A stretch of 64,000 nt of DNA, taken from the NCBI GenBank assembly GCA_002104905.1, contig MCFE01000140.1, positions 1 to 64,000 of the forward strand, written 5' to 3'. The notes under the pieces were generated by a model. That model did not search any database. It was given only the letters and a program-made list of their open reading frames with translations, and was not told the origin of the DNA. Positions within the stretch are counted from its first letter, which is position 1, and every line of letters begins with the position of its first letter. Shown in pieces: positions 5,862-38,900 of the stretch. Source of the DNA: Basidiobolus meristosporus CBS 931.73. Taxonomy: Eukaryota > Fungi > Basidiobolomycota. A program made the position numbers and the translations under genes.

Positions 5862-6235
5862 GAGTAATGTGTAGTTGACGCAACCGAAGCAAACCAACAT
5901 TCACTAATCAACAATAAAGTAAATAAATCACGTTGTTCCAATTTGACCAGTATCTCATCAATGCGCATAGACCTTGCTATTGAGGCAATTGGTCAAGCCT
6001 AAGTCATGGATTCAGAATGCTTTAATGCAGCAAAGTTGTTTCGTTGGCGTTTTTCGGGAAAGTTGGTACAAACTAGAGATGTTTATCAAGACAATAGGAT
6101 GCGGGTGCTAATCAGGACTGTATGGCAATGTGATAAATAGGACTTGGCTACCAACCTGTATAAATAGGACTATTCCCGGTCTAATTAAACTCATTGAGCG
6201 CTTATAAACAACGTATTATACAAGCCACTGCTACT

Positions 6236-7537
6236 ATGATGGTCGGGTCACCGTTTCGTTTGCTCCAGCCGGCTACGCCACTTCCTTCGCAAGCAATCCA
6301 GCTTAATGATGTTGATTTATTTCAACTGCCGTTCTATGTCTATCCTACATTCATCTTCCGGAATGATGATCGGTTGTCCCAGTTTCTACCCACCGAGAAG
6401 TTGATAGAAGGCTTGCGACAAGCCTTGAACCACTTTCCAATTCTGTACGGCCGCCTAGGCAGGACTGCGGCTGATGGGGTTGAGGTTCAGCCTTCCGGTG
6501 AAGGTGTTCCGGTCTATGAAAGCCAGACGGATACCAGTGTGCAGGATCTTGAGCCTCATTGGTGCTGTTCGGATATCCCAGTGGATTCAGATAGCTACAA
6601 ATTGGATGCGCAACAAGGGGATCCACTATGCGTAGTACAGATCACTCGTTTCGCTGGCAATACGGGAATTGCCCTCACGGTGATTTTACACCATTTCTGT
6701 GTGGACATCTTCAGTGCTGCTCAATTCACTCGCACATGGGCCGACTTCGTGCGCGGGTGCAGTCCACCTGAGTGTGTACAAAACCGAGCTCTACTTCAAG
6801 CAAGACCCACTGGTAATTCCACCCCGCCACCCTCTGTTGACACCTCCGCTTCGATGCAAAAGCCGAGAACGGTGGCGTTGGTTCTTGCCTCCGCGAAGAA
6901 CCTGAACAAGCTCAAGGAGGATGTGCAGGCCACCCTGCCTGCTGGGGAGAAGTTTTCGGTCCCGTGGATCTCGACACTGGATGCCCTGCATGCACTGCTA
7001 ATCGATGGATACCTACGTTTCGATGATTCGGGCGACGACCGTATCATCGCGGTGCAAGTCAACATTCGAAACCGGGCACCAAGCAGAATCCCAGCGAACT
7101 ACTTTGGAAATGCAGTGCTTCCCATCACGATTCAGGTAAGCGCCAAAGACGTGCTATCCCAGCCATTAGGCTATGTCGCAGCAAAAGTTCGCCACGAAAT
7201 CAACCAGCTGGACGAGGAGGCAGTGCTGGCCATGATCGATCGACTTGGCGATGACCCATTCGGGTGGCCAACACACGAATCATTGATGCGTACCTTCAAC
7301 ACGATGGACCTTGGCCTGACTGATTGGTCCAAAGCGAATCTATACGCCATTGACTTTGGCCACGGCCCACCAACTAGGTTCAGGGTGGCTAAGCGTAAAC
7401 AAGGCCCTCCTGCTATGTACATAGAAACCCCGCCGGATCTCGACGGCCTTGAGATATTCGTGACGATCCCAACCGATTTCTTTGAGCAATTCAGAACCGA
7501 TCCGCAGCTTAACAAATACCTAACCATCCTGAGCTAG
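6236..7537 (+). CDS. BAHD/transferase-family acyl-CoA acyltransferase (trichothecene 3-O-acetyltransferase/HCT-like), intronless
   Basis: HXXXD motif (HFCVD), YFGNA and DFGHG (DFGWG variant). First in-frame ATG is at 6236, with TATAAATA at ~6160. Confidence 0.9.
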   Translation: MMVGSPFRLLQPATPLPSQAIQLNDVDLFQLPFYVYPTFIFRNDDRLSQFLPTEKLIEGLRQALNHFPILYGRLGRTAADGVEVQPSGEGVPVYESQTDTSVQDLEPHWCCSDIPVDSDSYKLDAQQGDPLCVVQITRFAGNTGIALTVILHHFCVDIFSAAQFTRTWADFVRGCSPPECVQNRALLQARPTGNSTPPPSVDTSASMQKPRTVALVLASAKNLNKLKEDVQATLPAGEKFSVPWISTLDALHALLIDGYLRFDDSGDDRIIAVQVNIRNRAPSRIPANYFGNAVLPITIQVSAKDVLSQPLGYVAAKVRHEINQLDEEAVLAMIDRLGDDPFGWPTHESLMRTFNTMDLGLTDWSKANLYAIDFGHGPPTRFRVAKRKQGPPAMYIETPPDLDGLEIFVTIPTDFFEQFRTDPQLNKYLTILS

Positions 7538-8702: not shown

Positions 8703-10320
8703 ATGATTCCACAAGTAATTCCCGTCCTGCGTGTTCGGCCAAACCCCTACTAATGGCTTGTGTTAGTTGGAAGGCAACAGTTTGCTCAAAGAAGCTGCTT
8801 TCATAAACGGCAAGTTCGTCGAGGCCTCTTCAAGCGAGCGCTACACAGTAAAAGGTCGAGAACAGTTGGCCAGGGCTATGGGAAACCCTCGACTAATCTT
8901 TGTGTTATACAGATCCCGCGACTGGTATGGCACTTGGAGAGGTACCTGAAATGAACGGTGAAGACTGCAAAGCTGCCATTGAAGTTGCCACTACTGCCTT
9001 CAAGACTTGGAAGAAAACCACCGCAAAGGTATGCGTTTGAAATTCAGTGCGGGGGGCTTGCCTAACGTTCGTGAATGGTAGTCGAGAAGCGACCTGTTGG
9101 AAAAATGGTATCAGCTTATAATCCAAAACAAAGAGCCCTTGGCGCAGATTCTTACTGCTGAGAACGGGAAAAATCTGGTGGAGGCCCGTGGGGAAATCGA
9201 CTACGGCGCCTCCTTCATTAAGTGGTTTGCTGAGGAAGCCCGTCGGTCATACGGAGACGTAATTCCCGCCCCAGCACCTGATAAGCGTCTCTTGGTGATC
9301 CAACAGCCTGTAGGCGTGGTGGGAGTCGTTACCCCTTGGAACTTCCCTAACGCCATGATCACGCGGAAGCTTGGCGCAGCCCTGGCGGCTGGATGCACAA
9401 CAGTTCTCAAGCCAGCACCAGAAACTCCATTCTCGGCACTGGCGCTCTGTGAGCTTGCCAATCAAGCAGGCATCCCAGCAGGGGTCATCAATATCGTCAC
9501 AACAAGCAAGTACACAAAAGAGGTAGGGAAGGAGCTAGCCACCAGCGAAAAAGTGCACAAATTGACCTTCACTGGGTCCACGGCGGTCGGCAAATTGCTG
9601 ATGGAGCAAGGAGCCTCAACCATCAAAAGAATCTCGTTGGAGCTGGGGGGAAATGCGCCGTTCCTTGTTTTCGACGATGCCGATTTAGATGCAGCAGTCG
9701 ACGGAGCGATTGCCTGCAAGTTCCGCAACACTGGACAGACCTGTGTATGTAGCAACCGAATGCTGATCCAATCGGGGATCTATGAGGAATTCTCCAGGAG
9801 ACTGATCGAGAAGGTGAAGAAGTTCAAGGTCGGGCATGGGTTTGAAGACGGGGTCACCCAAGGCCCGTTGATCACCGAGGCGGCGGTGGCCAAGGTGAAG
9901 CGGCATGTTGATGATGCCGTGTCCAAAGGAGCCACGCTTGCACACGGGGGTAGGCACATGGGAGGAAACTTCTATGAGCCCACTGTACTCCTAGACATGA
10001 ACACGTCGATGGTGATCTCTTCGGAAGAGACTTTCGGGCCAGTGGCCGCTCTATACAAATTCGAGAGCGAGGAGGAGGCCATTGAGCTGGCCAACGACAC
10101 ACCATTTGGATTGGCGGGGTACTTCTACAGCAGAGACATGGGTCGTATATGGCGAGTGGCTGAGGCGATGGAGGTTGGCATGGTGGGAGTGAATTCCGGA
10201 TCGGTGGGCTTCGAGTCGGCACCGTTCGGGGGCATCAAACAATCCGGACTAGGCCGCGAGGGCTCCAAATACGGGCTAGAGGAGTATCTGGAGAAGAAGC
10301 TCATTTGTATGACCATCTGA
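8703..10320 (+). CDS. UGA2: Succinate-semialdehyde dehydrogenase (ALDH5/GabD), 4 exons, 484 aa
   Basis: Exons 8703-8714, 8767-8854, 8913-9028 and 9082-10320 sum to 1455 nt. ALDH motifs: [45 protein letters not shown]. Confidence 0.95.
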
Positions 10321-12942: not shown

Positions 12943-15900
12943 TTACATCCGAGGATTATTGACGTCCAACTCCCCCTCAAACATACTTACTTGGTCGTCG
13001 AGCACCACCGCGAGGTTGGATGCGATGTAGATGATCTTGCCATCGAGTCTGAACTCGAGACCATCAAGCACCCAGGAGTCCTTGAAGATGCCTACCTTCT
13101 CGAACCGGATTGCAAAGTGTCGGATCTGGCTCAACTCAAATACTCCGGCAACATCGATGAAGAACGAGTCGGTGTTCCCCTTGCCGAAAGACTTCCGAAG
13201 CAGTGTTTCCAGAGGATAGATTTGTGCGTAGTAGGACTCGGCCCGAAAATCCCCCAGCTGAAGGTTGACTCGTCCCCAGGTGCCAGCCCCATCAAAGCTG
13301 TACCACGGGGCAATGGAATTCTTGCCGGTGACGATGGTGATCTGCATCAATCGTAGGTACGTGGTGCTGATGCTAGGTGGCAGTAGCTCCTGCAAACTGT
13401 TGATGTAGTTGAGTATCGAGTGGCCTTTCCTTTCCGAAGCTTGATGGCAGTCGGGACATGATTGAATCCAAGGGTGAACAGGTTTATCGGCATGCTATGC
13501 ACCACGCTCAACTCCCCGTGGCAAACACCATCACTGGGATCCTGGAAGTGATAGCCTCGCATAACAGTCTGAAGGGTGATCCAGTATTGCCTGAACCCCG
13601 CATCGCCTACCGGTGGTGCTCCGTATGTCAGGCACTTGAGGAAGTTGCTGGATTGCGGTCCATACTGCTTGACCAGATGGTTGGTTAGGTCCACAGAACA
13701 CAAGATGGCCATAGCACCGCCTAGCGAATGGCCAGTGACGTAGATGGCCTCCATCCTCTCGGGGCCGCCCAGCTCTTTGATCAAGCCGTCGACCTTCTCG
13801 AAGATCTGGTCCTTTAGAGCGGTGTAGTAACGCAAAAAGCCTCGATGCACTCGTAGACTGCTGTAGGATCTCTCGGCATAGAAATCAGTGGTCAGCATAT
13901 CAGCATCGGCGAAAACGTCTTGCCAGGACATTGTTCCACGAAAGACCAATACGATGGAGTTGCAGTTGCTGGCGAAAAACCCAAACGAACTCTCTACCCC
14001 CACTCCGCCAGCCAGATACTCCCGCACCTTGAGCCCCATGTTGCCTAAGCGCTCTTCGATCTTTTCCCTGGGGTCGTAAGCAATCGAGGACAGGTTGGCA
14101 CAAAGCAGGGCGTTCTTCGAGAAATCCTTGTCGTAGCAAACCTCCGGGACATTGAGCGATCTCCTCCAGACACTCCCGTCGCACCCCAATCCCCAGACAT
14201 GGTTGCTATTGCCTGTGTGGACACTTCTTAGCTTCCCGTTCTCAAGAACGAACTTCTTGTTCCCTGTGTAGCGATAGATGTCCATATAAGGGTCAATCCC
14301 CCAGATTGTGCCGTCGCTGCCCACGCTGATGGACTTCAACTTGATGTGCGGGATCAGCTTCCAGCCGAATTGGAAGGTGTACTGGTACACTTGGTTGTAT
14401 ACAGTGGTAGCCCAGATATTCTCTGCATTCCCACTGCGATGGTTTGTAATTTCCCTTGGACATTTCCCCAGCTTCTATTCTTCTCCTGACCTTCTGCGGA
14501 ATTGTCCCAGGTCTCTTCCCCCTGCAGTTTCTTCCAGCCATTCTCCGCTCTTCTCCATAGAAAGCCATCCTTGTCCAGGCCCCATATCACCCCATCCGAG
14601 CCAACGTTGACGCATCTGAACCCATGCGATTCCCCGTCTTTAATCCATACGTTGTCCCGGAGCTGGCAGTACACATCACCCTCGGCATCCACGGCCCAGA
14701 CATTGTTCTTCATTCCGACGGAGATGCAGGTGAACTGACCGCTGATGGGCTTCCACCAACCACCACCTTCAACGCCCAAGCTCCACACGGACTGGTCTTG
14801 AGCTAGTCCCCAGACAGATCCATCACCACTTACACTCAGGTCTCGAAATCCGCCAGCCTGCGGGACAGGGATCTTTTCCCATCCTACATCGCTATTCCAA
14901 TAAGAGGCTTTTTCGGGCATGGGCAGCAGCCAGTTCTCCTCCCAAGGCTTGCATTCGTTGAGGTCTTCGATGTCTCTTGAGTAGATGGTATTAAAGGAAT
15001 CCACCCCGACCAGCCTGCACCCCTGCTGAGTCTCCACAAAGGTTACATGGGTCAGCAGCCGATCCGCAGAGAGATCGAGAGTGTTCCAGTTGAATGTTGA
15101 CATGGTTTTCAAGTGAATTTGTGTGATGCCTTCATCCGATTCCTGGATGTTGAACATCGTAGAACTGCCAAGTGCCAACTGGCTCAATTGGCCCATCGCT
15201 ATGTTGCCACGCATTACTTTCCTCGATTTCCTGCTGCCGAAATTTAGAGAGTACACCTCGCAGTCCGAATCGTAGACAAGCACCTCTTCTACTTGCGAGT
15301 AAGGTTGGAGATGAGTGTACATTCAACAGTGTGGAGGCTGCCAACTATTACCTGGCGATTGTTGATTCACGAACCCAGAAAACGTCTGGTTCGGAAATTC
15401 CTGAGCGAGGGTACTTCCTTTGGAGTTCGCGACGCTAAATCTCCACACTGTGCCACTTTCAGTGATGCCATAGAGAAACTCGCCCTCACCATGGATTACT
15501 CGGATTTGGTTAGAGAGGATGTGATTAATGTTGATTACCTTCCACTCGGCGGGGTCTTTCTCCTCCGAGAGCAGAGATATGGAGTAGATCTTTCCGTTAA
15601 CGCCTAAGGTGTACATGGTATCTTGGCTGATGGCAAGGCAACTCAAGATTGTAGGTGGCATTCTCGGCCATGATCTGTACCAAGCAGGCTCAGATTCGGA
15701 GCTAAAATCCATACTCCAGATCTCGTTGCGTTCGGTTAACATGATAAGACGTTGGTTCCAATGTATCAGCATAGGCAATTGTCTACGATGTATATTAGTC
15801 ATCGGTTGGTGCAGCAGGTCGGTCTATACTACTTACCGAGAATAAACAAAGTTGCGCTTTTGTTTCCGGCGAAACGGGAAATTCAGGCTGATTCGAATGT

Positions 15901-16507
15901 AAGTTTGGTTAGAAGTGCGACGCTACAGTTAACAGGACAACCAGACTCACCGTATTTTGCGCGGCTTGTTTACTTTCCAACGCCACCAGTTTCTCAGCAG
16001 CCGATTAATCAATCTTAGGCACTGGCGCTTGATTTCCGGTTTAATTTCGTCTAGTGAATCCACAACTGCTACTCCCTTCTCGGATATGTACTTGGTCTCT
16101 GCAACATACGGCCGCAGATATGATTCGACCCAGCGGCTTGCTTCGGATGAATTACCAACCGTAAGCTTGAGCTCTCTGTTGGGAAGCTTGACGAATATAA
16201 CGGATGGCTCGATCAGTTCGAAATTCAAAATACTGGAGCAATTGATTATTTTGGGCGCATGCAACATCTTGGGGCTTGAGCAGATAAACAGCGTCCGAGA
16301 GTCCGTATTGACTGCGTCGTAGAACTCGTAGATATCTTTCAGCTCACACTCCACTTTGCCGATACCATGGCGATTTAAAATTCCCTCGGTATCTTCGACG
16401 CTACTTGGTCTTTCATAAAGTATAAGATAGCATGACCTTTTGCCATCCTTTACCGTACCTTCACACAAGATCAACCGATTGTTTGAATCATGCACCGATG
16501 AAACCAT
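12943..16507 (-). CDS. ~1,129-aa multidomain protein: unknown N-terminus + six-bladed tectonin beta-propeller + class-3 lipase + PLAT/LH2; two 1-nt frameshifts in this sequence
   Basis: Exons 16507-15951, 15887-15837, 15782-15352 and 15291-12943 (GT-AG introns) total 3388 nt, or 3390 with 2 nt added. Six SVG-x-x-G-x-(V/I)W-type tectonin repeats. Lipase motifs VFRGT, VHRGF, GHSLGG and TYGAP. PLAT motif ITIVTG..AGT..F..G.TDSF..W.L. Confidence 0.85.
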
Positions 16508-17027: not shown

Positions 17028-20000
17028 ATGATCCGGCCACTGGAAAAAGAGACCATTAGAAAAATCAGCTCTGGACAGGTGATCGTTCATATTGACAACG
17101 TCGTGAAAGAACTCTGCGAGTAAGTCCTCGTTCTACGCTGGCCAATTTTGATTTGCACGAGTTCATTAACCACCATGACTGGTCTTATTTCCTGGATCAG
17201 AAATGCGCTGGACGCGGAGGCGAATTCAATTACCATTCGCCTGGTTGATGGCGGGTTAACTTCAATTTCGGTACATGCTGGCGGTGTATGATTTCATTAT
17301 TGTAAATCCTTCACCAAGCTAACGGACCGCGGCAAGGTCAAGGATAATGGCACCGGAATAGCCATTTCCGATCGTCCGAATATGACCAAACGGTACCATA
17401 CCTCGAAGATCACCAGCCTAAAGGATTTGAGCTCAGTGTCATCTTACGGCTTCCGAGGTCTACTCTCCATTCGCTACATTACTTACAGAAACTGGTACTA
17501 ATCTCATTCACAGGTGAGGCATTAAACTCCATATCTACAGCATGTCAACTACTGCAAATCACCACCCGGACGATTGATGATTACACTTCGTCCGTTTATG
17601 ATATTGACCAAACTGGTGAGATTATAAGGTCCGTTTGGCGTGTGTATTCTAGGCATACAATCTACTAAGTGTTTGACAAGCGTAAAATCCGCGGGAGGTG
17701 AATTGGGAACGACGATTTGTGCCTTCAACCTGTTCCAACCATTTCCAGTGAGAAGACAGGTACGTCTGATGGAATTGTCTCGCATTGAAACAAACAAGTG
17801 ATGCCCTTGAATAGGTTGCACAGAAAACAATCAGCCACGCCATTAAGCGCATCATGGATTGCTTAGTATCATATTCCTTGATTCACCCCAGTATCCGATT
17901 TTCGTTTAAAAACATAGATATCAAGAATTCCAAAAAGAAAAGCGCCGAGGCGAAAGAGTGGATCAAGATTGGAACCAAGAGTATTATGGATTCGATTAGC
18001 GCGATCTTCGGGAAGGTGCTTGTGAGCCAGCTTGAGTACAAAACGTATAGAACTTCTGAAATGCCCGGTGCCGTGAGCAGCATCTATTTGGAAGGGATTT
18101 TTCCCAAAGCAGATTCAAGTAACTTCGTTGTGTTTAATCTTCCGAGGTTTTACTGAGATTAAGCAACCCTCCCTAGACGCAGCCGTTGTATGCCGAGGAG
18201 AGAGATCATTTTTCTACATCAACAAAAGACCAGTGCTACCCAGCAAAGGGGACATTAAGCATATTTTGGGCAAAATTCGGGAGAAGTACAATCAAGCGAC
18301 CGGCCAAGCGCTGAGAGACACTACTTCTGGTCAGTTGTAGGACCATTCTCTGCGCCGATTATACGAAATGATTGTTGACGGTTGAGTCTAGGGCCAAAGA
18401 GAACTCCGTTTGTATTGCTTCATCTCGAACTGCCCTTGGGCAGCTTCGATGGTAACTATGGGTTGTTGTTTTTGAGATTCAGCACCAAGCTAACCATCGC
18501 ACAAAGTCAATGTAGAGCCCAACAAAAATGTCATCCTTCTGCATCAGTCAGAAACAATCTTTCATGCCATCGACAGATTTTTAGAAGAATTTTACTCTGA
18601 ATCGCACGCTTCTGTCCCGTCGGAAGTAGAGAGAAGACAGGAAATAGTAGAAAAGACACAACTCAATCCGGAGCCTGCTTCCAGGTAAGATAGCAGTATA
18701 TTGATTCATTATTCAACCTCACTTAGTCTCCTTTAGCTCCGATGTAAAGTCAGAATTAACAAAACCGACAGATAGCGCACATCTACAAAATGCTGAAGCA
18801 CAATATTCTACCACGGATAAGGATGGCTTAGAGAATATCAATCATAGACCACCCATAGTGACAAGATCGTATGAAAGCGATCCAAAACTTATTGCTGGTC
18901 CAGCAAAAGTAACTTGTCCTACGGAAAGACTTGAGTCTGCCCCCAAGAAAATATTAAACATCAATGGTAACCACTGCATCAGAGATGATAAATCACAGTA
19001 TTCATCCCAGAAGTTGATTTCCAAGGAGCATTGGAGTAAAGGGCATGTAAGCAGACCTGCTGTACTACTCAATTCCGATAGAAGCCAAGCCAATGCTACG
19101 ATATTGGATCCGATTCCTCATGCTCCTATCCTCTCAGGATCGAAGGCATCGTCCTGTGGTACAAACATCAAGTCTAAGACTCCTGGTGAAGTGACTCGAT
19201 CAACCTCTACCGATAAAGCTTTCAAGTCCATACCAAAGCCATCAAGTGCCCGGCTTATCGCAGCCCCCCTACCACCTAAGAAGAACTTAAATGGAGCCCC
19301 TGGGTTAAGTAAAGCTGAAGATCTTGCTGTCAACTTGGACAATCCCCAGTCTATGACTTCACACGATCTGAACCAAGTTTCTATAAACAATGTGCCAACT
19401 AATGGTAAACCGATGAACTTGGCAAAATCCCCAGGCCATAGTTGTAATCAAGAGCATAATAATCAACAACCGCGTCTTCAATGTGACACTATCAATGCAG
19501 AGACCTCTTTTACTGGCAAGCGGGAATCTGCAGTGACCCCGAAGTCGCAACCGAAACGATTCAAATTCAGTTCAACAGAAAACCCCGTTAATCCCACTCA
19601 ACTGCTGCACGAAGATTTACCGCCGAGCTCATGTCAACAGTCACACACATATCCACCCAAAATGGTGGATTCGCTATGTCACGAGCTTCAACAAACATTT
19701 AGTGAGCCCTCTGCCACAAGAGGATATCGCATAATGCGAAACCGATGGGAACGACTATTTGATCATCACGATCGTATAAAATATCAACAGCCATATCGAT
19801 ACATCGGAAATTTGGAGAAATTCTGGATTATTAAACATGAGAACAACCTGTTGGCAGTGGATTCGATCAGGTATATGGTTCATACTGTGTTGGCTATGCA
19901 CATATTCATATTGCTGACCATGTAAAAACAGGGCCCAGTACCCGATTATCTTCTCAACGCTAATGGAGGGCTATGAGTTCCCTCTTACTCCTCTCAAGAC

Positions 20001-35992: not shown

Positions 35993-38900
35993 TGTTGTAA
36001 AAATTTGTATTTCCACCTAAATATTCACCTAACTTAGTCACTTAGATTATCACCTTCAAATCCCAGAGAATACTGACCAAATTCCTAGTTGGGACTTAGA
36101 ATATTTTCACCAAAATACCAGGTACCCAGAACATAAAAATTCTCAAAGTTGTCCAAGCAGCCCAAACTTTGCACACATGTTCTTGGAACCTTCCTTAATC
36201 TATTCTACGTGTTTGTAATGCCAAGGCCAGGCAAAAGTATAAATACTACTTTTACATTCAATAAATCATTAAGTGCAAACCACATAATCTACTTGTTCTC
36301 CAAATCACTTCCAATATCTCCAAGACTCTTACAACAGGTTATGAGCCCCAAGCTGTCACTCTCTGCAATCTCTACTACTGCTATTACTGGAATTTTTCCC
36401 TCTGCTGAAAAGTTGGATGGATCTAACTACCAAGTGTGGAAGGTGAAGATGAAGATGCTGCTACAAGAAAGAGGCCTTTGGGATATTGTCATGGGAGAAG
36501 AATGCCCTCCTAAAAACGTGGGAGAGGAAGCCTTAAAGTACCAGAAGAAAGAACAAAGTGCCTTTAACTGCATTTGCCTTAATGTCAAGGACAAATTGCT
36601 AATTCAATGCTCAAGAGCAAAAACAGCAAAGAATGCCTGGAAAGCATTAGAGGACACCTACCAGTCATGTTCAGCTGCTAAGAAGATGTATCTGAGACGA
36701 AAATTCTTTACTACAAAGATGCTGCCAGGAGAAGAAATGAAAAATCTAATTAATAGAATTACCCTGCTGGTAGATGAGATGGAATCTGTGGGTGTACCAA
36801 CTACTGATGAGGATGTGATAGTTACCATCCTGAATAGCCTGAGAGACGGGTTTCAGGGCCTTGTATTAGCCCTAGAGTCCAGAACTGAAGATTTGACCTT
36901 AAATTATGTATATGGAAGGCTCCTGGATGAAGAATTAAGAAAATCAAGCGCCAATAAGAAGGAAGAAGAAAATGCTTTAATAAGCAATAATAACCAACAA
37001 AGGAGGTACCCAAGACCCTACAAAGGCAACAGCAACCTGTTTTGTAACTACTGCAAAAGAAATGGACACACATCAGACTGGTGTCTCAAAAAGAAAGATA
37101 ATCAGCAAAAGAAGCCTGAATATGGAAATGCTGCAACAACTGAAGATAGACTATTCATATCTGCACTAAATATGACCACAAACAAGGATTCTCAGACATG
37201 GTATATTGACTCTGGAGCATCTCAACACTTTACACACCAAAAAGAACTTTTTACCCATTATCAAGAAATTCCAATTAAGAAGGTTTTCATGGGTGAAGAT
37301 AGAACACTCAATGCAGTGGGAGAAGGAACTATCCAAGTAAACCTTAGAAGTAGTGAAGGAAGCCATACACCAACCTTTAAAGAAGTACTCTATGTACCAG
37401 AAATAGCCAAGAACCTACTCTCTGTAAGCAAGGTCACAGCAGAGGGACTCAGTTTCAGTTTTGACAATTCTGGATGCAGGATCACTGATCAAAATGGTGC
37501 TCATATTGCTTCAGGCATCAGAGATCAGAATCTATACAAGTTGACTTATATTCCATCATATCTGGAAGCCAATATAAGTAACTTAAATGAAGAAACACCA
37601 ATGCTTTGGCACAGGAGATTTGGGCACATCAATTTTGATTATTTGCGCAAAATGATCAAAGATCAGCTAATTTCTGGAGTGAAAATTGATCCCCCAGCTA
37701 ATTTGGAGCACTGTGAAGCCTGCATATATGGGAAACAAGCCAGACAACTCTTCAAGAGCTCTGGGTTAATCAAAACTAAGAAAAGATTAGATCTAATTCA
37801 CTCAGATCTGTGTGGACCTATGCAAAATTTATCCTTAGGCGGGATGAAGTATTTAATCACTTTTATTGATGATTATACAAGATACACATGGGTCTACTTC
37901 ATGGAGAGAAAGGAAGAAGCTCTGTCTAAGCTCAGGGAGTTTAAAGCCATGGTGGAGAGAGAAACTGGTGAAAAAATCAAGAAAATACGCTCTGACAATG
38001 GTGGAGAATATACCTCAAAACTCTTCATCCACTTCTGCAAAATTCATGGGATAAAGCAAGAGACTACTGTACCATACTCCCCACAGCAAAATGGAGTAGC
38101 AGAACAAGCTAACAGATCAATAATTGATATGGCAAGATCTATAATCCATGATCAAAAATTATCCTATGATTTTTGGGCGGAATCAGTTGCCACTGCTGTA
38201 TACCTTAAAAATACGAGTTATAACAGAATACTTTGTGATTCTACTCCATTTGAAGCATGGTATGGATACAGACCAAGTGCAGAACATCTAAGAATATTTG
38301 GGTGTACAGCATATGCCAAGAAACTGGCCAGAAATCAGTCAAAATTTGAGCCAAAAAGTGTAAAATGCATATTTTTGGGCTACTGCAATGAGAGTAAGGC
38401 ATACAGACTCTACAATACCAAAGCAAAGAAGCTGATCAAGTCCAGGGATGTGTTGTTTGATGAAAATTCAAAATTTTCACAAAAAATGACATCAGATGAT
38501 GACAAAAATTTGATCTCAAGTCCACCAATTGTCAGGATAGAATCAGAGCAAAACAATGAATATTTTTCACTCCAGAGGACTCTACAACCGTGGTTCAGCC
38601 AGAATCAGTGCCCAGGAATGTCCCAGAAGTGATCATTTCAGTATCAAATGCCCGGAGATCCAATCAAACAAGAAATAGCCCAAGTTACTATATTAATGAG
38701 GGTACAAACTTAGCCTATGCCTATTCAGTCCATATTGATGAGCCCCAGACTGTAAAAGAGGCCCTAAATAGCCCTCAGACAAAGTTTGGAGATCTGCAAT
38801 GACTGAGGAATATCAGGCCCTGATGGAAAATCAAACTTGGGACTTAGTCAAATTACCAATCAACCAAAAATCAATTGGATGCAGATGGATCTTTAAGACA

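Follow-up and report, generated by a model that had tools for sequence, protein, structure and literature searches.

The genome of the fungus Basidiobolus meristosporus CBS 931.73 carries, on contig MCFE01000140.1, a gene in which a class-3 lipase is fused to a lectin-type propeller and to several other domains. We analyzed the first 64,000 nucleotides of this contig (the window, to which all coordinates refer unless another contig is named). Five consecutive open reading frame (ORF) pieces on the minus strand, from position 16507 down to 12943, constitute one gene that begins with ATG and ends with a TAA stop codon (12945-12943). The extent of the gene (12943..16507) is supported by tblastn comparisons of proteins P0001 and P0152 with the window and by synteny. 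Its product begins with a PH fold and a divergent propeller-like region, followed in order by a tectonin propeller with six blades, a class-3 (Rhizomucor-type) lipase domain and a PLAT domain. This fusion architecture is real and rare, and among the named organisms searched it is confined to Basidiobolus.

The gene is already held by GenBank and the Joint Genome Institute (JGI) as locus K493DRAFT_314232, which encodes a 1091-residue “hypothetical protein” (ORX97082.1; UniProt A0A1Y1YGD3). Its ortholog in Basidiobolus ranarum is K7432_004023 (P0152, 1170 residues), and the neighboring MutL, Etd1-like and Metallophos genes are retained in synteny between the two species. An earlier note on this DNA had described a fusion of tectonin, lipase and PLAT domains. 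All of the motifs it listed were located on the minus strand at the coordinates it gave, while its description omitted the N-terminal ∼470 residues (∼45%), which hold the PH fold and a propeller-like region of ∼270 residues.

The tectonin propeller occupies positions 14151..14883 (minus strand). When the ORF pieces of the window were compared with Pfam, Tectonin (PF19193) was matched with scores of 54.3 and 46.4 bits (E 1.7e-14 and 4.2e-12), above the cut-off of 30 bits. Moreover, the corresponding region of the B. ranarum ortholog matches Tectonin 2 of Laccaria (Lb-Tec2; 5FSB) with an E value of 7.7e-29. All six of the tectonin-type blades proposed earlier are present, with the repeated xVGxxxxVWG core.

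The lipase domain (13390..14126, minus strand) is recognized by Pfam Lipase_3 (PF01764) with 79.9 bits (E 2.2e-22; cut-off 22 bits), by invariant alignment columns and by fold matches. Alignments across homologs show that the columns of the catalytic serine (GHSLGG, codon at 13727-13725) and aspartate (DPSD, 13532-13530) are invariant, and that of the histidine (GH..NY; GHSILNY in this gene, 13422-13420) nearly so, which bears out the proposed lipase fold with a Ser-Asp-His triad. NCBIfam profiles returned just a sub-threshold XopAP-like match around the nucleophile elbow. An AlphaFold model of the lipase and C-terminus of the intact B. ranarum ortholog, built from a 39-row alignment (mean predicted local distance difference test score [pLDDT] 86.5), places the lipase part close to class-3 lipases and feruloyl esterase A (FaeA), with Z scores of 22-25 (FaeA 24.7, Rhizopus lipase 23.7) and a Foldseek E value of about 6e-14.

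The remaining C-terminal portion (12946..13358, minus strand) comprises an eight-strand beta-sandwich of the PLAT (LH2) type, which in the model packs against the lipase, and a short tail. Pfam PLAT (PF01477, cut-off 23 bits) scores this piece of the window below its cut-off (15 bits, E 0.042), and does not match the C-terminus of the ortholog when that is searched alone. Two related metagenomic proteins, P0032 (28.4 bits) and P0078 (24.8 bits), exceed the cut-off, and the Basidiobolus C-terminus aligns with both of them (E 1.5e-5 for P0032 and, by phmmer, 3.3e-14 for P0078). In the model, residues 256-386 superimpose on the PLAT domain of Clostridium absonum alpha-toxin with a Z score of 12.5 and a root-mean-square deviation (rmsd) of 2.3 over 112 aligned residues. 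Further PLAT matches are 5-lipoxygenase (Z 10.3), coral 8R-lipoxygenase (9.7), 15-lipoxygenase (9.4), Rab6IP1 (8.7), and PLRP2 and LPL (about 8). The C-terminal domain is thus confirmed by the predicted fold (Z 9.4-12.5, pLDDT 86.5) as the PLAT domain that had been proposed, despite its low Pfam score.

One unbroken exon encodes tectonin, lipase and PLAT in the B. ranarum ortholog (794-residue ORF), and likewise in two B. meristosporus paralogs, L005 (806-residue ORF) and L088. One continuous exon in the ortholog and in both paralogs rules out separate genes for the three domains, and the view that they belong to one polypeptide stands.

The N-terminal domain, encoded at about 16477..16103, is as modeled a PH fold. 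Residues 11-135 form a sandwich of seven strands with a C-terminal helix as its cap and a helical insert between strands 2 and 3 (pLDDT about 85-89). The closest structures are those of IRS-1 (Z 11.5, rmsd 2.0), TAPP1 (10.7), ARAP3 (10.4) and Osh3 (10.2), with DAPP1 also within the range of 10-11.5. Pfam PH is matched weakly (E 0.034), and just in the paralog P0153. That the protein lacks a signal peptide is a judgment by eye only, in keeping with an N-terminus that is polar and that supplies the opening strand of the PH fold. Between this domain and the tectonin propeller, residues about 200-470 are predicted to be all-beta. A moderate-confidence model of this middle region gives generic propeller matches (Z about 10-10.8), and BamB is matched with an E value of 9e-4; together these support a generic propeller fold alone. 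A second true tectonin propeller is not established there, since the Pfam score (24.6 bits) is below the cut-off and the hhalign probability is 8.5%.

The first ORF pieces join into a single open frame once three short GT..AG introns are removed. Exon 1 (15951..16507) encodes the PH-fold domain and a helical linker. It is followed by intron 1 (15888..15950, 63 nucleotides, GTGAGT..CAG), whose excision produces an open frame matching the JGI and B. ranarum proteins, by exon 2 (15837..15887, 51 nucleotides, containing LNFPFRRKQKRNFVYS) and by intron 2 (15783..15836, 54 nucleotides, GTAAGT..TAG), all on the minus strand. Exon 3 (15352..15782, minus strand) encodes the beginning of the middle, propeller-like region, the remainder of which is specified by the start of exon 4 (14884..15291, minus strand). 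The intervening intron 3 (15292..15351, minus strand, 60 nucleotides, GTAATA..AAG) includes an in-frame TGA at 15325-15323, and the L005 paralog likewise carries a stop codon in frame at the corresponding site. Intron 3 has two candidate AG acceptors located 3 nucleotides apart (15292 versus 15289, minus strand). In the JGI model the downstream site was chosen, and the two choices differ by one residue (QQSP-V-EEVL versus QQSP-EEVL).

Within exon 4, the window copy deviates from its homologs at two sites. Frame break 1 (14429..14432, minus strand) is a one-base gap relative to B. ranarum that lies in a short G/A run and cuts blade 4 of the tectonin propeller between ...KLQTIAVG and NAENIWAT.... 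Frame break 2 (13425..13426, minus strand) is a second one-base gap, one codon before the catalytic histidine. The B. ranarum ortholog and the two B. meristosporus paralogs are continuous across both sites. JGI model ORX97082.1 bridges the breaks with “introns” of 41 and 68 nucleotides, respectively. We reject both introns, which would remove the core of a blade and the near-invariant histidine; their 5′ ends (GTCCAA and GTCCCG) are unlike the three genuine donors, and the homologs are coding throughout. The deposited protein lacks the catalytic histidine motif due to the invented 68-nucleotide intron. In the sequence as assembled, the histidine codon, just past break 2, is out of frame with those of the serine and aspartate, and this copy as it stands cannot yield an active enzyme. 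The “frame-corrected” protein of the earlier note glosses over these two one-base breaks.

The breaks reflect either long-read consensus error or very recent inactivation, and the chances of the two are nearly balanced. If they are genuine, the window copy is a recently inactivated pseudogene and the intact L088 and L005 carry the function of the family, a reading that is compatible with the function proposed below for the family as a whole and that falls only slightly short of an even chance. The earlier note did not weigh this status. Two separate one-base breaks fall in the same 2.4-kb exon, break 2 right before the catalytic histidine, and redundancy could be provided by L088, a near-duplicate homeolog with about 71% amino-acid identity. 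The same assembly shows no such breaks in the paralogous exons (∼2.4 kb each) or in ∼6 kb of neighboring coding sequence, and on this ground we lean towards real lesions in the window copy. However, both breaks fall in short homopolymer runs, which are typical sites of long-read consensus errors, and the three frame segments are free of premature stops, larger indels and raised non-synonymous change. Indeed, comparison with B. ranarum gives proportions of non-synonymous differences (pN) of 0.11-0.16 against synonymous proportions (pS) of 0.75-0.87 in all three segments, revealing strong purifying selection on each.

At least three loci of this family are present in B. meristosporus. Lineage A is the window gene; lineage B is L088 (MCFE01000802.1, 4075-7812), which is intact and shares ∼71% amino-acid and ∼70% nucleotide identity with the window gene; and lineage C is L005 (MCFE01000110.1, 5240-9029), intact and about 45% identical. 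The triad and the exon for the PH fold are kept in all intact copies. B. ranarum has the lineage-A ortholog and two fragments, P0153 and P0182, each roughly as close to lineage A as to lineage B. The window gene and L088 are both flanked by MutL-type and aldehyde dehydrogenase genes (17100-19925 and 9097-10320 in the window, both plus strand; 1-2934 and the far end on the L088 contig), and therefore look like homeologous blocks that may have arisen by segmental or whole-genome duplication. GenBank represents L005 and L088 as several small partial proteins, such as ORX98625.1 (158 residues) and K493DRAFT_157866 (175 residues). Because none of the three loci in B. meristosporus has a public model that is both correct and whole, automated surveys would miss the family.

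A scan of 1.84 billion representative proteins and three word-indexed searches found the full architecture in Basidiobolus alone among named organisms, and searches of 5.8 and 1.8 billion proteins revealed no other named fungus with a member of the family. The representative proteins yielded ∼340 hits at E<1e-10, and two of the word-indexed searches added only Basidiobolus fragments and generic lipases. A literature search for tectonin-lipase or Lipase_3-PLAT fusions, and for tectonin in Basidiobolus, returned nothing relevant. Each of the component domains is well known, and the sequences have been deposited as hypothetical proteins. The earlier assertion that no protein of this architecture had been described holds for characterized proteins; it does not extend to deposited sequences, given ORX97082.1, K7432_004023 and the metagenomic protein P0024.

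Elsewhere in the window, a 447-residue ORF (6194-7537, plus strand) upstream of the aldehyde dehydrogenase gene matches the BAHD-type “Transferase” family (PF02458, E 6e-41). An 827-residue ORF (36149-38632, plus strand) with gag, pre-integrase and integrase domains belongs to a copia-type long terminal repeat retrotransposon. Its surroundings, the right half of the window, are AT-rich (GC about 0.37-0.41, compared with about 0.50 around the lipase gene).

Relatives outside Basidiobolus are rare; they were found in metagenomic data and carry various portions of the same arrangement. Five proteins (P0079, P0081, P0087, P0099 and P0149) join tectonin to Lipase_3, two (P0032 and P0078) join Lipase_3 to PLAT, and P0024 combines ricin-B, tectonin, Lipase_3 and a PLAT-like domain. 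Typical bacterial genes are present on the contigs of P0099 and P0078, P0081 adjoins a phage-tail-collar gene, and the contig of P0024 has a GC of 69%. Among the matches listed from a scan of GTDB representatives there were ordinary Lipase_3 genes only, and none of these matches reached into the PLAT domain. As to their surroundings, P0078 (L003:6742-9090) is near SIR2_2, nSTAND1/CHASE2 and Tricorn/PD40 genes and P0099 (L001:12978-14558) is near a gene for a caspase-like Peptidase_C14, neighbors that resemble those in bacterial conflict-system islands.

In a tree of lipase domains, the Basidiobolus clade is sister to a group formed by P0078, P0024, P0032 and P0114 (Shimodaira-Hasegawa-like approximate likelihood ratio test [SH-aLRT] 86), and the two together join a clade of tectonin-lipase proteins (SH-aLRT 89); the tree is unrooted, has moderate support and comprises sequences from our own queries only. 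These relationships suggest that a single ancestral lectin-lipase(-PLAT) module is common to bacteria and Basidiobolus and was possibly transferred between them. Such a history agrees with the bacterial gene flow already reported for Basidiobolus, a herptile gut fungus (PMC7466969).

Taken together, the data make it reasonably probable that the family, with its three or more lineages, consists of large cytosolic lipases that are docked by PLAT and aimed by lectin-like domains, and whose core module was exchanged with bacteria. The PLAT domain would dock the lipase on a bilayer, by analogy with lipoxygenases, pancreatic lipase and clostridial alpha-toxin. Choice of the target surface would fall to the tectonin propeller, which has a lectin fold, and to the PH fold and additional propeller, and the lipase would then cut acyl esters of lipids in the targeted membrane. 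Bacteria and the Basidiobolus lineage would have exchanged the core module, to which the PH fold and the second propeller would later have been added.

The most likely setting for such an enzyme is a plausible one by analogy: an antagonistic, defense-type chimerolectin kept in the cytoplasm. We favor an antagonistic role because lectin domains recur beside this lipase clade and because lectin toxins of the fungal cytoplasm are a recognized group, with examples such as Lb-Tec2, which acts in defense against bacteria and nematodes (PMC5238581, PMC8227253), and CCTX2 (PMC13324453). The sensing of foreign glycans followed by hydrolysis of the attached membrane, as proposed in the earlier note, would fit this setting, and is supported only indirectly, by the repeated pairing of lectin and lipase domains in distant relatives. 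A still more specific scenario is unlikely in our estimation. It holds that Basidiobolus captured a bacterial lectin-aimed lipase-PLAT module, equipped it with the PH fold and second propeller and duplicated it into three lineages, producing the first known lipolytic chimerolectin, an intracellular defense effector that would destroy glycan-bearing membranes of microbes or nematodes.

Several observations weigh against the proposal of a lectin-aimed lipase exchanged with bacteria. The PH fold and second propeller are atypical of known fungal defense lectins and suggest targeting to intracellular membranes or proteins, and the basic patch of the PH beta1-beta2 loop, judged by eye, varies among the paralogs. 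Proteins P0024, P0032 and P0149 are without an assigned origin, such that neither the transfer nor its direction is established. Finally, the intact state of the paralogs and neighboring genes noted above counts against the window copy as a working example.

A role at the fungus's own membranes is nearly as likely a setting as the antagonistic one, and the PH fold and second propeller fit it about equally well. In its full form, in which the PH fold and propellers recognize the damaged or specialized membranes of the fungus itself or a protein partner, the lipase-PLAT portion remodels or degrades lipids and no foreign glycan takes part, this housekeeping account is rather unlikely. It draws on the N-terminal PH fold and lack of a signal peptide, on three anciently diverged lineages under purifying selection, on ordinary housekeeping neighbors in conserved synteny, and on the occurrence of tectonin repeats in intracellular, non-lectin settings such as TECPR1 and TECPR2. 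In TECPR1, an animal autophagy protein, the tectonin repeats are accompanied by DysF and PH domains, and there is neither a lipase nor a PLAT domain. However, Pfam scans detected no DysF or other hallmark domain of TECPR1 in the Basidiobolus family, the lack of the family in every other fungus searched would be odd for a core role, and the closest relatives of the lipase are fused to lectin-type domains (ricin-B and tectonin).

It is very improbable that the protein is a non-catalytic, EDS1-like signaling scaffold whose lipase fold merely offers a surface for interactions, an analogy raised earlier that proves weak. The fold search did match EDS1 and PAD4 (Z 15-18), but with lower scores than true lipases and feruloyl esterase (Z 22-25). 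Every intact family member, like the distant relatives, retains the complete Ser-Asp-His triad, and the C-terminus is a PLAT domain rather than the EP domain that follows the lipase-like domain in EDS1, PAD4 and SAG101.

If the lectin-aimed enzyme is active, it would add a lipid-hydrolyzing effector to the fungal lectin-effector proteins, which so far have proteases, pore formers or toxic folds of unknown kind. If its core module did come from bacteria, it would be one more instance of bacterial gene flow into Basidiobolus (PMC7466969). That tectonin-lipase and lipase-PLAT pairs recur in uncultured microbes unrelated to one another is an argument for joint action of the parts, and provides a testable hypothesis on what tectonin domains aim at.

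Several known systems resemble parts of the Basidiobolus protein. TECPR1 is likewise intracellular and combines tectonin-type propellers with a PH domain, but it contains DysF and lacks lipase and PLAT, and no specific homology was found beyond the repeats. The class-3 lipases of Rhizomucor and Rhizopus and FaeA of Aspergillus have the same fold (Z 23-25, rmsd about 2.5), the GHSLG elbow, the triad and a Pfam Lipase_3 match. However, they are small, secreted, single-domain enzymes with about 20-26% identity, whereas the Basidiobolus protein is predicted to be intracellular and has targeting domains on both sides of the lipase. In clostridial alpha-toxin (phospholipase C plus PLAT), lipoxygenases and pancreatic lipase/LPL, a PLAT sandwich is also joined to a catalytic domain that acts on lipids. 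The zinc phospholipase C of alpha-toxin and the catalytic domain of lipoxygenases are unrelated to Lipase_3, and the pancreatic-type Pfam Lipase is only distantly related.

In the metagenomic proteins P0078 and P0024, the lipase and PLAT portions align end to end with those of Basidiobolus (E 2.5e-45 and 2.9e-33, respectively), and P0024 also has tectonin upstream. The metagenomic relatives differ in having 24-30% identity, in lacking the PH fold and second propeller, and in carrying other N-terminal modules (ricin-B and DUF5648). Lb-Tec2 (5FSB/5FSC) shares the six-blade tectonin propeller, with the match to 5FSB comprising three stretches, and is also a fungal, cytoplasmic protein that lacks a signal peptide. 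It is a stand-alone lectin of 227 residues, whereas the Basidiobolus propeller is part of an enzyme-bearing protein of ∼1130 residues, in which the binding of O-methylated glycans is putative and rests on homology.

Lipases and tectonins are both absent from a 2025 review of chimerolectins (PMC12355970). Marasmius oreades agglutinin and Coprinopsis CCTX2, which defend against predators, join one or more lectin modules to an effector in the absence of a signal peptide (PMC13324453, PMC6272156). Their lectins are beta-trefoils, and their effectors are a protease or a KP4-like domain. The Basidiobolus architecture shows the features that define chimerolectins, in that a lectin module is linked to an effector domain, here a candidate lipase, in a protein with no signal peptide.

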